A DNA stretch of 64,000 nucleotides from Mytilus edulis (GCF_963676685.1 NC_092347.1:89590001-89654000), one strand, 5' to 3'; positions 25,657-34,600 are shown, numbered from the stretch's first letter. A program made the numbers and translations. Notes: a model not told the origin generated them from the letters alone.

Positions 25657-28600
25657 TTATGTTTCATCCTTTAGTGCTGATGTCCATATATCGCTGGATG
25701 GTTTCTCGGGAAGAATAAAGCCATCAGGAATTCTATTGCCTCCTGGTGTTCCCTCCGGTACACTGAATCTGTCCCAATCACATCTACAAATATAAAACAA
25801 AATACATTTCAGTTTAAAAGGGGGGATAAAATAAACTAATTTTGGCAGCAATATATGGACTTCATCAGTTATCTTCCCTTATTCAAAGTGTAAACTATAA
25901 ATAATTTTTAATAAAACATTTTGCACTCTGAATGCTTTTGATAACTTTTGTTCTTAGGTTGCTCTCTGATTGATATATAGCTGACATCTTTAGATATTAT
26001 AGCCATGAGAACAAAATACGTAATGTATCATATTAACATATTGATGTTTGATCTCATCAGACTATACTGATTGACAATCGCACCTTTTCTTCTTTTATAA
26101 AGAAATAATTTAAATATAACCAATTCAATCATTTTTTAATTATGATACTGTATACAGATCTAAAGATAGTTGTCTTAATATATAATCAAGCTGTGATACT
26201 TTATAAAAGTTTCAATCACATTTTTGGCTGTATCTTATGTCATCTTCATCACTAAGAACAAATTCAAAAATTAATGTTCTGATTTCCAAGTTAAAGATGG
26301 AACAAAACCTGAAGGAAATCATCTAGCAATGGGGAAATTCAAAATGATCCTTTTAAGGATGTTCACTTGTCATGTTTTGGGGATTTTGTTCAGATTTTCA
26401 GAACCCTCTAGATCTGGTTTTATCCATTTGAATGTCTTTTTTTTGCCCATTGACCCCATTTTCTTTTTTTTTAATTTTTTACCTGAATACTGTATATAAG
26501 CAATCTGTAAAAGTCTTATACAATTTTAAGTATTATTTGATAGTTTTTGAGATTTAAACTTGTCAATGATAAAGCTACGATAAGTAAGGAGAGAACATTT
26601 TCTCGCCAAAATTTCATTGGCTAATATCTCAAAAACAAGCACATTGACCAATATATTTTTTTGCTCTTTGATTCCTTTATTAATCACCTATCAATGTAAA
26701 GTAGTGTTTTGAAAAGTTACAGTTCTTCTATAAAAGCATGCAAAACAAATTATTGATCAACTTGCTTGCTAGGTTTGCTTGGTTGTTTGCAAACAATAGG
26801 TAGGCGGAGTTTCAGTCTGTTTTTATATTTACTGGGATTTGATTCGACAATAAGAATTGACATGAAATGAATTTAATGTCTATTGTCCAATCATATTCCA
26901 GTAAATAGTAAACACACTGAAATAGACTACATACCTGTTGTTTACAAACATCCAAACAAATATAGCAAGCAAGTTAATCAATTGTTTGTTTTGCATGCTT
27001 TAAAAGAAGAACTGTAATTATTTTTAAACTGAGAAGCGAACTCCCTTAATGGCATGAGTAATCAGAGATACAAATTATTGTTTTGCTAGACAATTGGCTT
27101 CTGCCAACTAATCAACTTTTCTCCATACCTACTTTTTAGAATTTGTTTGAATAGTTCACTTTTAATACAGTATGATTATTTGTATATCTGATGGGAGTCA
27201 TAATAGTACTAACCTGATTTGAAGTAAGGAATCAACAGATACTTGAGCTTGGTCATAATACTGACTAAACATAAACATTGGATCATTCATATCTACTGGC
27301 TCTGAAATAAAATCAAGAGCTTGGTCATAATACTGACAAAATATAAAACATTGGATCATTCATATCTACTGGCTCTGGAAATAAAATCATGAGCTTGGTC
27401 ATAATACTGACAAAACATAAACATTGGATCATTCATATCTACAGGCTCTGGAAATACAAATCATAGGAACACATGCATTTCCAACAGCCAATTGAATATT
27501 GAAAAGAAATTATGAGCAGCAGGTCTATATCTTAAATACTTTTTAAGCCTGTGTTTTCATAAATGGTAATTGATTGAAATCATAATTTCCTTTTCCTGTA
27601 ATTGTTGTATGCAGAATCTCACAATAGTATGTATTTCATTGGTTATTCAAATTCATTGCTTATTTGAAATTTATTATCCATTCAAAATCATGTAGTTACA
27701 TTTAGAATATAATATGAATTTTTCAATATCCCATAAGATCAACCATTTAATCCATGAACTCTGTTGAACAATTTTATCAGTTGACTTTAAAAATGTGTAA
27801 AATTTGTTATTTGGAAACAATTATGTTTTGTATATTATTTAAAAATTTTACCTGATATGTCAATAGTTTATTAAGATCCATCTTTAAAAAATTTACTTCA
27901 ATTTGCAAAATAACAAGATTTTATCAAATGTGAAATATCAAACTATATAACTCTTTATACATGTTATATCTCTGGTAATAAATATATAAACCTACATGAA
28001 GTTCTTGGGATTTTTCTTGTCTGTTTAAATGAAAACATATAAATTATTACAAATGTAAATTTTATTTACCTGATTCACCAAATAATAATTGATCATCTTT
28101 CTTTTGTCTTTTTATTTCAAGACTACGTAAAATCTGTTGTAATTTCTCTCTTTCTTTCTCCTTGTTTTCTTCCTGTTCTATATCCAACATCACCTATTAA
28201 CAATAAATTTGACATAGTGACTCTGATTAAGCTACATGACTACTACTGCCTTTTTAACTTGAAGCTCTGTACTTTTATGTTGAAGGTAATTGTGAACTAT
28301 ATGGATAACTTTAATTTACATACCAATAGAAAGTCCAGCATATATCTACTACTTCAGAATTGATGGTTGAACTTAATAATTATTTTAAGAAAGGCATTTC
28401 CTTGGCTTTATATACATGAGAACTATCAATAGAGAACTTCTTTAAATCCCCAGCATTAGGACTCTGATAAGACAGATGTCTAATTACCAATCATACCACA
28501 TACCCTTGTTTTACATTAGTTTTCTATAAAGATATTTTGGGAATTGAAGTTGGAGATAATTAAGGAATATGTTATAATTAATACTTGATCGAGAATAAAT

Positions 28601-31600
28601 ACTAGTGCAATAATATTTCTCCTATATTGCCACAAGATGGATGAATGAAATTTCAAGATGAATGATCTCATTAATTATAAACTATTTTCCTTTTAATACA
28701 CTATTCCCAAATATTTAATGGATTTGTCACCAAGTCCATTCTCATATATCATACATACCAAGTGGAAAGATGAACATTATTTAAGTCACCTCATATTTAT
28801 ACCAATATGACTTTATCAATTGTTTTTGTTGCTTTGAAATATAATGTAAGATGAATTAAAGGCAATAAGATTAATGTCAACTCCATGAGATGATTTAACT
28901 GATAGGGACATTACTAACCTGCAGTGCTTTATTTTCAGCAGTATAAACTTTCTTTTGTGTTTTCACAACATCCAGACAATCTTGAACTTTATCCTCAAAA
29001 TCTGCATCACTCTCTGGTTTGGTGTTTACTCCTTAAATGGTCAAATATTTAGTTTAAATCAAAAGAAGAGAAACTTACACTTAATTATACTTTATATATA
29101 AAACATTCCCATCCTGCTATGAACAAAATCTTATCAGAGAAAATATACCCATCCCATTATGAGTGTGGAAAAATTTTGGTGTAATTTAAACTTTCAAAAT
29201 CATACAGCCATTATTACAGAAATAAAAAAAATATTCGTTTAGTAGGTCTCGGATATTTCCAATAAGGTATTTTTTTAATGAGTGTTAAAACTATGAGTCA
29301 CTGTAGCTCCCTTTTTTCACCTGATAAGATCTTGAAGAGAATCTTTGTATCAATATAAGATCAATTATTCACAGAGTTTGGTCACTCATAAATAACCTGT
29401 TTAATTAAAAAATCCTGTTTTATTTTAATTTTATATAAGATCATACAGGTATTATTTCTACTAAGTAAGGAGTAAAGAGAAGCATTTTTGTAACAAACCT
29501 TGCTGTAATAATCTATCTTTCCTCAATTTTCTGAGTTTAGTCAGATTTTTCAGTAAATCTGTGGCTCTTGTAATATCTTGTGTTTTCTTTCTGATTTCAC
29601 CCAGAACTTTGTCTGCAATCTGCTTCAACTCTTTTTGCTGTATAATACACCAAAACGGAAATATATGAATAGGGCTTCTCAACTCATGTAAATAATAACT
29701 ACATAAAACAGGCATTCTGCTATCGGTATAAAATCAAGGTAATACATAAATTTTAATGGGTTAAAAAAATTATTTTCTAGACCAAGCTTCAACGGGAATG
29801 CACAAAGTTCTTTCTTCAATGTTCTTAAAAGTTTTCAGTCGATATAAGCATATAAAATGTATTAATTATCTTGGTTATTTTAACATGTTTAATACATTTT
29901 GTCATCCATAAAAAATGAACAGATCTAATTTTTATGTTGGAAAAATTATCATGAAATTCTTTCTTTGTAAAGCTTTAACGTTTTTTTCACATCACAGCCC
30001 ATAGATACATTAACAAACACTACCTGTCTTTTGTTACCGTATTTATCATGGACTTTCTTTAACCTCCCATCTATTTCCTTGTGTAATTGTTCTCTCTGTT
30101 CTAATTCTCTCTGTCTGGATAAATATTTCTCTTCTCTTTGTTTCTTAATCCTCTCCTAAAATGAAAGTTCATTCAATTATAAGCAAACAAAAATTCTAGT
30201 GAGAAAAATAAAATGTTGGTCATTTTGCTTTTCTTGATGTGTTGTTGTTCATGGAGAATTACCCAAAACATATTTCAAATTTGAGATCAATATTAGCTGT
30301 TTGTTAGAATAAATTTGTACATGCATATGGTATTTTACTAAAATCTTTCAAAATAAATTAATGTTTATAACAATTAATATTCTGTTTATCTTGGTATGCA
30401 TCTATCCTTTAAGGTTGTTTTGTATTTGTTAGCTGTTGGTTTTGTTTTTTTAATTAATTTTGTAATATCTGCCAGAAGATATGATAGTCCAGTTATCAAT
30501 ATATATTTGTTCCACGTAACAGAAGTTTCCTACATACTTTTTTGTATAAACAATGCAATAAAATTTGTTCCTTTGCCCTTTATTCAGTAAGAAACAAATA
30601 CTGTAATATTTGTTCCAGTGGCAATAATATTACAGAATATTTTTTTGACTTTCATTATGACAGAACTTCTATTTCATGTCGAAGGTGCTGGTGGTGAGAT
30701 TCAGTGTGATTTATAGTGTTATCCTGTCTTAAATTATTTGTAAAAAACAAACTACACCAAACTAAGAAAATTGAACTACAAAATTGAATTTTAACTGGCT
30801 TGAAATATCTTTTTTCAATACCTCTGATTATTAGTATCTCCATAATCAGAAATGTTTTGTCATTTACAAATTTAAATTTAATTGATGGAATTCTAATAAT
30901 TTTAATCTAGCGATATATATATATTTAGTGTATTGTAACCCATGGACAGACCTAAACTTAAGTGACATAGTTTTAGTGTTAAGGTATTCAAAATCTTTAC
31001 TCTGTAATGTAATGTAAAATTGTGATATGTTTGTTGTACAACTTCATATCTGTTCATGATATCACCAGTTTCTAGACTCTTTGAATATAATCATATCTAT
31101 GTGTTCCTGTACTGTGTCAATTTTTTTCTTTCAAAATTTAGACTTTTAGAATGGTGACATCATGTTATCCAAGAAAAAAAAAGTTCAAAGAAATACTTTA
31201 ACTAAACTATGAAAAACATCCAAATAAAAACTATGATAAAACAAGGGTCATGGACGTCTGAACTGATATCAATTCAACTGCAAACAAAGTAATTTGCAGT
31301 TAAAAGATTTGTTGAATCAGATCATAGAATGAATGAAATGTCAACAGTAATTGAAGCTGAAAGGATATAATACAGTAATGCAAAAGGATATTTGTATAAA
31401 CAGGCTAATAGTATTCTTTTTGTCCAGCTAGAATGTTCACATACTGAAAATAATACAAAAAATAAAGTTATTTCCAAATTTCATTTAATTTTTTTATATG
31501 ATGTTGTGTTTATAGTATTCATCTAATTATTTTATATTCCATAATCATTTTACAAACAATACACAAGGCGTTAGAACTTTTTACCATTCATTATCCCAAC

Positions 31601-34600
31601 GTTATCAAATTAACCAATGTTTGGATGAACAAAATTACTGGACCCGACTTCATTTGTTTGTCAACTCTTCTTGTACAAACACCGCTTATTCATACATCTA
31701 ACTTTAGTTTTTTATGTACAAATGTATAAAGTAATTTTTCTTTAAGCATTTAATGAAAACTATCTTCATACATGTTATATGTGTCAGTACAGTACAGTTA
31801 ATACAGCTAAAACATTGCCCTTTTCAGGTTTTCTTAAAATGTTTTGAATGAATTTACTTTGCCAACCCTAGACACATGATCTCATCTACTTATTCAAGAT
31901 AAAAACAAATTAATAACAAATGAATGTGTTTCTACTTATACACGCACTGTACATGTATTATAATTTAAACCTGAAACTAACCTTCTTTTTGATGAACCTT
32001 ATAACTGATACTTTTGAAATAAATTGAAAATCATAACTTCATAAGGGAACTAAATAAACTGGGATAATTTGATTCCAAAAGGATATGAAGGATCAAAGCT
32101 CAAAACCATATCATCTATCAGCTACAAAATTTCTGGCAAAGACAATGATCAAATTATATTACATGAATTGTAATACAAAGGGAGGAGGATTCTTATGGTT
32201 GAGGAGTCTTAAATAGAAGGTTTGGGTTAATGGTACATGAATAACTAAAGCCTTTTATTATTTTCATAACCATTGGATATTTCAGGAAAATTCTGAGCTG
32301 TTTAAAGTTTTGCACAACTTTGACACAACAAATTAATAGCTTTCAACAAACCCTTTTTTGCATCCTCTTCTTAACTTTCATTCTTAAATCCAGAACATCT
32401 ACTGTGGACAAATATTTCCTTATGGCATCCATTTCATCCTGTACAAATATAGACATTTCGAAATTATTTTCAAAAATAAAATAAAGATATTATTGGTATT
32501 CAAATGAAGAAATTTTAATGAATCATTTCAATCATGTCAATATGTATGTAATGTATGTGATTAGATCCATACACATGTACATTGTAGGTACAAATGTATT
32601 GGTACTAAAAACAATTGTTACATCATTCAGCAGTATACATTATATATATGTAAATTTATTTAAATGAATTCCATCTTTTTCAAGTTTCAATTATTTGCAC
32701 AAAGCATTAAAAAATCAGCAATCAAACAATTATCTATACATTCTATATGCATGATACAGATGTATGTTTAACATACAAATGTACATGTACACATCCCATA
32801 CAAAAAAAATCCATAACAACTAACAACATGGAACATCTGGATTCCTGTATAGTTTAAATATTTCTCTTCCATGATTCTTTATAGTTCTTTCATACCTTCA
32901 ATTTATTAGTTGTTCTCATTTCTTCCTCAATCTGATGTTGATCACATGATTTTAAAATCTTGATCTGTTTTTGAAGGGATGCCATCAGAAACATCATTCT
33001 TTTTGTTTTTTCTTGGACATCATATAGCTGAAACATATTATGAAAATTGAAAAAGATGTGTATAAATAAAGCAATCTTGCATTAAACCCTACAAAATTTC
33101 AACTGAAATATATACTTTTTGCATAAAGAATTAAAAGTTTTTCCAACATGCACATTTAAATGCTTTGCATACAATGTTTGTACATTGTAAAGACAAAATG
33201 TTTGAGACTTTACTTTGTAACAACTACTGCTTCCCTTAGTTGGTATCTCAAGGAAAACAGACTTGCTGTAACCCTAGCCTGGTCCCTTACATACATTTGT
33301 ATAACCAACATGACCAATCAACAAGTGTACACATGTATATCTTAACACCTGTAGATGGTTTAATCATGTCCAGTTTTATTTACATTAACTTAACAATTTT
33401 TTAGGGGAAAAGATCCTTAGCTTTGACTTGTTTGATGGTCTCAACCTGTGTGATATATGCAATAGTCCAACAAAAAGGTAAATTAATGTCTGTTAAGAGT
33501 TAAAACTTTACTTGCAACTTTGAAACTTACACATATAATACGTTTTGGCCTGACCCATAGAGTCTTGTACTTTGAACAAAATTGAGGTTGCTGTCTAATT
33601 GATGTGTACCCTACATTATGTAGCTACAAGTACACGAGACATGAAGTACAATGTCATGAATGAAACATTTATCACATCACAATACAGTTCAATAATTCAA
33701 TCGATTGAATCTTGTTTGTCTATCATTGGAATGTTGCAATACTTATTTTAGAATTGTACTTCAGCGTATTTTCACTAGATCATTTATGACACTGCTCATC
33801 TATATATATTGATATATAGATTGAGTATTGTTAGCCGGTAAACAGACAGAGAGTCACAAGACATGAAGTCACAAATTTGATAGGTCAAAAAGTCACAGGA
33901 CAAAAAGTCACATATAATTCTTCAACAATTGTTTGAATATACATGTATAAGAGAAAGATCCAGAAATATTTTCTTTTTACTACATACATATGTATATTAA
34001 TTTTTCAGATAAGGAAATTTGTCACAGGTTTTGATAAATGAAAATTCATCACATTTTAATCATGCAAAGAATATATTTCTTAGCACCATGAAGACATTTG
34101 TGTACCAAGCAACTTTGACATTTTGTTTTAATAACAATTATTTGATCATTATTGATATTTATTGAAAACATTTTAATTACAAAATTAAAGTTGCCTTTTA
34201 TATCATTGTATATAATAGTTCAAGAAAAAACAAAAATATTCGTTTTTAAATTTGTGTTTTCTTGTTCAAAGAAATATACATGTAGTCTCAAAACTGAATT
34301 GTGACTTTTTGTCCTGTGATTTTCTGTCCTACATTTTTGCTAGCCAATTCTTACATTAACTGGTGTTTTGACACATTCTTTTTTCTGGACCTTCCAATCA
34401 TCAGATTGTATTCCTTTTCTATCAAGCCATGATTTTATCCACTCTGTATCTTTTTCTTTCCCTGGCAGTACAGTTGCATGTTCTGTCTGAATTAATTCTT
34501 TTTTAAGTTGAAACGGCTGCTGGTGGTGCTGCTGAATTTGCTGATTCATAACTGGCTTGAGTGGAGGAGGATGAGAATTTGGAGGAAACGGATTTGAACC

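Follow-up and report, generated by a model that had tools for sequence, protein, structure and literature searches.

A Candidate U11-Sensing Feedback Element in Intron 3 of the U11-59K Gene (PDCD7) of Mytilus edulis

Introduction

The splicing enhancers that bind the U11 snRNP (USSEs; snRNP, small nuclear ribonucleoprotein) are tandem U12-type 5' splice sites that bind U11, do not serve as donors, and switch on, through exon definition, a U2-type 3' splice site upstream of them (PMC5473595, PMC3584512, PMC8329584). They are located in non-coding parts of genes for U11/U12-specific proteins and yield an unproductive product (PMC5473595, PMC8329584), which is either a target of nonsense-mediated decay (NMD), as with SNRNP48, or a nuclear-retained RNA, as with RNPC3 (PMC5473595, PMC3584512, PMC8329584). 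Reviews published in 2019 and 2021 name these two genes as the only known hosts of USSEs. Here, we describe a candidate element of this kind in PDCD7, which encodes the U11-59K protein, within a stretch of 64,000 nucleotides (nt) from the mussel Mytilus edulis (GCF_963676685.1, NC_092347.1:89590001-89654000). The whole stretch is referred to below as the window; it corresponds to 89.59-89.65 Mb of chromosome piece C4 in a genome of 1.37 Gb. The choice of host is of interest because 59K bridges 48K and 65K, both of which are under USSE control (PMC5473595).

The two described USSEs differ in where they act. In SNRNP48 (U11-48K), the tandem is intronic, and together with an upstream acceptor it gives a poison exon that leads to NMD (Verbeeren et al. 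2010, as relayed by PMC5473595, PMC3584512 and PMC8329584). In RNPC3 (U11/U12-65K), the USSE is in the region of the 3' UTR (untranslated region), where it selects an upstream 3' splice site, and the long-3' UTR isoform, to which U11 is bound, stays in the nucleus (PMC5473595). Related devices include the autoregulation of splicing factors through poison exons, for example, in U1-70K and U11/U12-25K (PMC3584512), as well as the U12-type intron of Drosophila Urp, which undergoes alternative splicing coupled to NMD (AS-NMD), and the U2/U12 twintrons (PMC3584512, PMC6865273).

The mussel locus resembles the USSEs in two respects. It contains two perfect copies of the U12-type 5' splice-site 9-mer ATATCCTTT with starts 23 nt apart, and these lie in a non-coding part, intron 3, of a gene for a protein specific to the U11/U12 di-snRNP, 59K itself not being among the two known hosts. 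An earlier note on this DNA, made from the sequence alone and called here the original prediction, had proposed a U11-sensing feedback exon at this position and had presented it as not known to be described. Indeed, no USSE, poison exon or U11 feedback tied to PDCD7 was found in the literature that we searched.

Results

Intron 3 of PDCD7 is a U2-type intron of 2,196 nt with an A+T content of 73%, and it carries three perfect sense-strand copies of ATATCCTTT, which matches the consensus for U12-type 5' splice sites. Two of the copies form the tandem and the third stands alone upstream (Table 1); the positions that had been predicted, 31391-31383 and 31368-31360 for the tandem with a further copy in the same intron, are all correct. 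The repeat finder reveals no extended flanks shared among the three copies beyond the 9-mer, save for a short word, and neither Tandem Repeats Finder (TRF) nor the repeat finder detects a duplication in intron 3 beyond the 9-mers. The lack of common extended flanks therefore suggests that the copies arose independently, or that they descend from an old duplication of which only the 9-mers were kept.

The identity of the host gene is supported by several lines of evidence. A 420-residue open reading frame (ORF) at the first exon (35602-34343, minus strand) shows no difference, at any of its 416 exon-encoded residues, from XP_071170158.1 of M. edulis, a protein annotated as 'programmed cell death protein 7-like isoform X1'. 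The Pfam family PF16021 (PDCD7) matches exons 5-7, and the full protein aligns with human PDCD7 in the U11 snRNP structure (PDB 8r7n, chain D) with an E value of 1e-42 over residues 475-726. The family match, the identity to the annotated protein and the structural-chain match together establish the gene as mussel U11-59K, the host that had been predicted. Exons were searched singly, with database proteins standing in for the full length, and when these proteins are aligned with the stop-to-stop frames the gene resolves into nine exons. Each of its eight introns is U2-type, with GT-AG ends. PDCD7 proteins were found for M. edulis, M. galloprovincialis, M. trossulus, M. coruscus and M. californianus.

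The tandem is preceded by a U2-type acceptor of exceptional strength, and we refer to the two together as module B. Acceptors were scored by the number of pyrimidines at positions -23 to -4 of a YAG without an upstream AG. By this measure the module B acceptor (AG at 31445-31444, first exon base 31443, 52 nt to the first motif) reaches 16/20, the highest score among the 107 AGs of intron 3, and exceeds each of the eight real acceptors in the gene (10-14). The acceptor of exon 4, its would-be competitor, scores 11/20. So strong an acceptor 25-60 nt upstream is found for only 0.9-1.7% of positions in the window. The site is strong yet unused in all annotated PDCD7 proteins, which fits an acceptor that has no U1-type partner and needs U11. 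When exon 3 is joined in phase 0 to base 31443, the reading frame continues as YVNILAGQKEYY and then stops. Both the acceptor 52 nt before the tandem and this YVNILAGQKEYY-stop reading had been put forward in the original prediction, and both are borne out, the coordinates having been checked base by base.

The single motif is contained in a complete candidate poison exon, module A. Its acceptor, ...ttgtctttgccag/ (the slash marks a splice junction; AG at 32134-32133), has 13/20 pyrimidines, within the range of the real acceptors. The exon (32132-31982) is 151 nt long, which is not a multiple of 3, and it reads KFCS-stop, so that translation would end after four codons. It is closed by the donor AAG/GTTAGT (31982/31981, GT at 31981-31980), which is of a type common to two real donors of the gene and scores 3.9, where the real donors range from -0.04 to 5.0. 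A frame of acceptor plus donor such as this one would occur by chance with a probability of ~0.6%. The donor of exon 3, from which either module would be joined, is the weakest in the gene (-0.04 as compared with 1.2 to 5.0 for the other seven), as expected for a regulated intron.

Table 1. Features in and around intron 3 of M. edulis PDCD7, in window coordinates; slashes mark splice junctions
Feature	Position	Strand	Remarks
PDCD7 exon 3 (DEMDAIRK...RMQKR)	32352..32438	(-)	ends in phase 0
Exon 3 donor, AGG/GTTTGT	intron bases 32351-32346	(-)	score -0.04
Module A, complete candidate poison exon	31982..32155	(-)	acceptor, 151-nt exon, donor
Single ATATCCTTT	32078..32086	(-)	46 nt into module A; 695 nt upstream of tandem
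Module B acceptor, ...attattttcag/TAT	31444..31470	(-)	TAAC branch-like element, long T-rich tract, CAG
Start of module B exon	31405..31443	(-)	phase 0 from exon 3: 12 codons YVNILAGQKEYY, TAG at 31407-31405
First ATATCCTTT of tandem	31383..31391	(-)	52 nt past module B acceptor
Second ATATCCTTT of tandem	31360..31368	(-)	23 nt start to start after first; 14-nt gap
CCTTAAC, sole U12 branch-site-like heptamer of intron 3	30978..30984	(-)	384-407 nt downstream of tandem
PDCD7 exon 4 (ERIKKQ...GNKRQ)	30024..30155	(-)	acceptor 11/20 pyrimidines; no U12 branch site ahead

The clustering of the motifs was evaluated against the genome. The 9-mer occurs 36,534 times on both strands, or 1.34e-5 per strand-nt, which is near Markov expectations. 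At this empirical density 0.029 copies are expected in intron 3 and 0.10 across all PDCD7 introns, where three are observed, so that P(>=3) is ~4e-6 for intron 3 and ~2e-4 for the gene; the rough figure of ~0.04 such 9-mers per 2.2-kb strand that accompanied the original prediction was about right. If the tandem is counted as one duplication, two independent events remain and P is ~4e-4 for intron 3. The window as a whole has six copies where 1.37 are expected, a number reached in 0 of 100 shuffles. A reversed-pattern control yields ~105 strict tandem pairs (gap 5-35) per genome, which corresponds to ~3e-4 expected on the PDCD7 sense strand. From the 9-mer density we estimate that ~5 such 2.2-kb clusters are to be expected in the whole 1.37-Gb genome, and we put at ~3e-4 the chance that a U11/U12-specific gene has one on its sense strand, assuming ~150 kb of such genes. 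It is very unlikely that the motif cluster in intron 3 arose by chance.

Copies of the 9-mer elsewhere were considered as well. The copy at 38893-38885 (minus strand) of the window and one at C12:37.25 Mb have ~40 nt of flank in common (GGTTGTTGTC.CTTTGA.ACATT.CCC before the motif), and part of the genome's background of 9-mers is therefore carried by a dispersed repeat. Long satellites with one perfect U12 5' splice-site 9-mer per 26-58-nt unit are present at C2:74,314,658-74,317,633, C2:71.40 Mb, C1:112.14 Mb and C8:14.16 Mb. These satellites dominate every genome-wide search for tandems and would amount to dense U11-binding arrays if they are transcribed. Tandem pairs are not in themselves rare in the genome, and among the matches listed nearly all are in satellites.

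Other identities for the intronic element were tried and set aside. The motif and module regions are single-copy in the genome, as a genome-internal search with the element region also found, and they are therefore not parts of mobile elements; with TRF and the repeat finder likewise null, a repeat or mobile element was rejected. No Rfam family is present in intron 3, where the matches amount to sub-threshold microRNA noise that overlaps neither the modules nor the motifs, and a known RNA gene was rejected on this basis. A structured RNA over the motifs was rejected at z = -0.25. A metagenome scan with the PDCD7 protein found no relative, and a cross-species search with a spurious 51-residue ORF that spans the element gave no match.

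We also searched for the elements that a U12-type intron would require. Nothing like a U12 branch site (TCCTTAAC-like, 10-20 nt before the 3' splice site) is present ahead of exon 4, in agreement with the original prediction, which had found no U12 branch point there. Given this and the U2-type character of all eight introns, an ordinary U12 intron ending at exon 4 was rejected. The only heptamer in intron 3 that resembles a U12 branch site is CCTTAAC, of which ~0.09 would be expected by chance in the intron (our estimate, from base counts). Counted from its branch A, an AC occurs at 9 nt and again at 17 nt, and the sequence TAG/GTCTGT comes next, at 30952/30951.

The U11 small nuclear RNA (snRNA) and other minor-spliceosome genes were then located. 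U11 snRNA gives five matches on C13, the best at 96 bits (27,078,112-27,098,071 and 27,671,518-27,671,644). Its 5' end, AAAAAGGGC, is canonical and complementary to the CCTTT(T) of the motifs. A tandem ATATCCTTT pair with a gap of 10 is found at C13:27,126,449-27,126,476, ~28 kb from the U11 cluster; this pair is probably part of a repeat because its first 19 nt are common to a pair at C5:74.36 Mb. SNRNP48 was located by PF05253 at C3:8,181,400-8,187,300 (plus strand) and confirmed against 8r7n chain F. Each of two further loci, C12:30,114,293-30,118,395 and C12:37,251,357-37,254,791, carries a pair of CHHC zinc fingers (zf-U11-48K type) separated by a few kb, and both are probably GTSF1-like genes rather than SNRNP48. 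SNRNP25 has no cluster of U12 5' splice-site motifs inside the gene. With SNRNP48, whose sense strand is discussed below, and SNRNP25 as negative controls, the PDCD7 cluster stands out.

Finally, exon 8 of PDCD7 has a peculiarity of its own. Its acceptor and first ~60 nt are triplicated in tandem, in units of ~71 nt (window 27201-27460, minus strand), and the two upstream copies end in stops. The second copy is the one found in RefSeq isoform X2 of M. edulis, which ends in ...DPMFYILSVL; in M. galloprovincialis, X2 draws on a similar decoy. The triplication is a second route to truncated 59K within PDCD7.

Discussion

The arrangement described above suggests that intron 3 of PDCD7 holds USSE-type U11-binding splicing enhancers that could provide U11-sensing negative feedback, a reading to which we assign a probability of roughly 0.5. 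The feedback device would probably comprise both modules. By analogy with the known USSEs, abundant free U11 or U11/U12 di-snRNP would pair through its 5' end with the ATATCCTTT motifs, and the bound U11 would replace U1 in exon definition and thereby activate the U2-type acceptor 46-52 nt upstream, at 31444/31443 for the tandem and at 32133/32132 for the single motif. Joining exon 3 to either acceptor would bring a stop 12 or 4 codons on, respectively, and the protein would end at about residue 488 of 729, with the loss of almost the whole region that it shares with the human protein as conserved sequence (residues 475-726). The resulting RNA might be subject to NMD, or it might be held in the nucleus with U11 bound, as is the long RNPC3 isoform. 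Less 59K would mean that less U11 snRNP is assembled, which would constitute the negative feedback. To our knowledge, USSEs are the only documented case of gene regulation by a spliceosomal snRNP that binds a decoy splice site.

The proposal of a U11-sensing feedback exon in 59K retains its USSE-like anatomy, its distance from chance and its non-repeat character; it is weakened by an SNRNP48 that has no USSE and by a tandem that has no donor, and there are further points that weigh against it. Within 340 nt after the tandem there is no usable U2-type donor, the best of 17 GTs scoring -3.6 as compared with -0.04 to 5.0 for the real ones, which keeps module B from being a clean cassette exon. 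It would have to rely on RNPC3-like retention, on a distant or poor donor, or on splicing by the minor spliceosome. Module A has one motif only, whereas the published USSEs have a tandem. The second motif of the tandem runs straight into CAG and so creates an acceptor-like site at 31357/31356 with 14/20 pyrimidines, and the location of CCTTAAC downstream of the tandem is a further complication. In ~19.5 kb of the SNRNP48 sense strand there is neither a tandem nor a single perfect U12 5' splice-site motif, so that USSE regulation in this lineage is hypothetical; RNPC3, which has no specific Pfam family, was not located in this genome. Satellites aside, tandem pairs among the matches listed are no commoner genome-wide than in the reversed-pattern control, and the genome shows no general excess of tandem U12 5' splice-site elements. 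No protein of ~490-500 residues is found among the RefSeq and Logan cluster members, and in both M. edulis and M. galloprovincialis the triplicated exon 8 is all that sets RefSeq isoform X2 apart from X1. This negative is a weak one, since assemblies seldom include isoforms that are rare and prone to decay. As to spacing, the distance from acceptor to element is reportedly 25-50 nt (Niemela et al. 2015); both modules are near this range, of which the 46 nt of module A would lie inside and the 52 nt of module B at the limit or just beyond.

These points raise the question of whether the sequence is simply neutral, with 9-mers, acceptors and stops that coincide, perhaps by way of an old microduplication in an AT-rich intron, and without effect on PDCD7 expression. 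After the motif the two tandem units do have a further short word, ATTACTGT, in common, a possible trace of an old duplication of 23-26 nt, and stops within a few codons are expected in any AT-rich intron. Other copies of the motif sit in repeats, such as the 38893 and C12 copies with their ~40 nt in common, and in satellites; the absence of a matching isoform from the RefSeq and Logan proteins would also follow, and the finding was selected from a very large scan. Neutrality must, however, accommodate a probability of ~4e-6 for three independent copies, or 4e-4 for two events, multiplied by 1-2% for the strong acceptor, in addition to the ~0.6% for the acceptor-plus-donor frame of module A. 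While ~5 clusters are expected genome-wide, the figure is ~3e-4 for the sense strand of a U11/U12-specific gene, and the regions are single-copy rather than repetitive. On balance we consider a neutral origin unlikely, though it deserves to be kept in view.

U11 or the minor spliceosome could also act here in ways other than through an enhancer. If the ATATCCTTT copies were true U12-type donors, joined with CCTTAAC at 30984-30978 and an AC or AG 9-22 nt on, the intron would contain U12-dependent poison exons, and the minor spliceosome would be sensed by catalysis instead of by a non-spliced enhancer. This would account for the lack of a U2-type donor in module B, and the heptamer does have AC at 9 and 17 nt with a GTCTGT donor-like site right behind; moreover, for Drosophila Urp it has been suggested that an AS-NMD U12 intron provides feedback (PMC3584512). 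Such splicing would nevertheless leave an exon of only 10-18 nt from the U12 3' site to the next donor, the base preceding the heptamer is A where the consensus has T, and three donors for one branch site would be unusual. One CCTTAAC in 2.2 kb has a chance probability of ~0.09 by our estimate, and PDCD7 is without any other U12 intron, all eight donors being GT and U2-type, all of which makes true minor splicing improbable. Alternatively, U11 may bind without activating the upstream acceptor, delaying the excision of intron 3 in the manner of a decoy or silencer (retention or detention) or masking the CAG at the second motif. That the second motif is part of the acceptor-like site 31357/31356 agrees with such a role, as do the weak exon 3 donor and the nuclear retention that accompanies U11 on the long RNPC3 isoform (PMC5473595). 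Such a role does not explain the 46-52-nt acceptor spacing, however, or why the acceptor at 31444 is so exceptionally strong, and of the possibilities considered here we judge it the least probable.

If the feedback reading is correct, PDCD7 would be the first USSE host outside SNRNP48 and RNPC3, in a new phylum, and the element would possibly replace the one that is missing from SNRNP48. With two USSE-type modules in PDCD7 and none in SNRNP48, it is tempting to suggest, tentatively and at less than even odds, that the feedback was handed over from 48K to 59K in mytilids, which would amount to the evolutionary transfer of an autoregulatory node within one snRNP. The device could then arise anew or pass between genes of one particle. 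A third host that bridges the other two would complete feedback over the 48K-59K-65K chain. PDCD7 would also offer a natural test of what is essential to a USSE, since it presents a tandem and a single site, with and without a U2-type donor, at spacings of 46-52 nt.

Comparison with Known Systems

Of the described systems, the candidate in PDCD7 is most readily compared with the USSE of SNRNP48. Both are intronic and reside in the gene of a U11-specific protein, with a perfect tandem of U12 5' splice sites, an acceptor tens of nt upstream and an immediate stop, and module A is like the 48K poison exon in being closed by a U2-type donor. The differences are that the host is 59K, that the tandem has no U2-type donor in 340 nt while the module that bears a donor has a single motif, and that one intron holds two putative modules. 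In having a tandem without its own downstream donor, PDCD7 is like RNPC3, and retention rather than decay would fit module B. The RNPC3 element, however, is in a terminal exon and acts with polyadenylation signals, whereas that of PDCD7 occupies an intron in the middle of the gene, with no AATAAA or ATTAAA nearer than 450 nt downstream.

The comparison extends to less closely related devices. As in poison-exon autoregulation generally, a spliceosome component would limit its own mRNA through an unproductive splice form; the sensor in PDCD7 would be the duplex of U11 snRNA and mRNA, however, and not the encoded protein alone. With Drosophila Urp and the twintrons, PDCD7 shares the presence of U12-type signals within a U2-type intron of a splicing-related gene, an arrangement proposed as a feedback device. 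The U12 sites in those systems are spliced, whereas PDCD7 has no convincing U12 3' end, only one CCTTAAC ~400 nt away.

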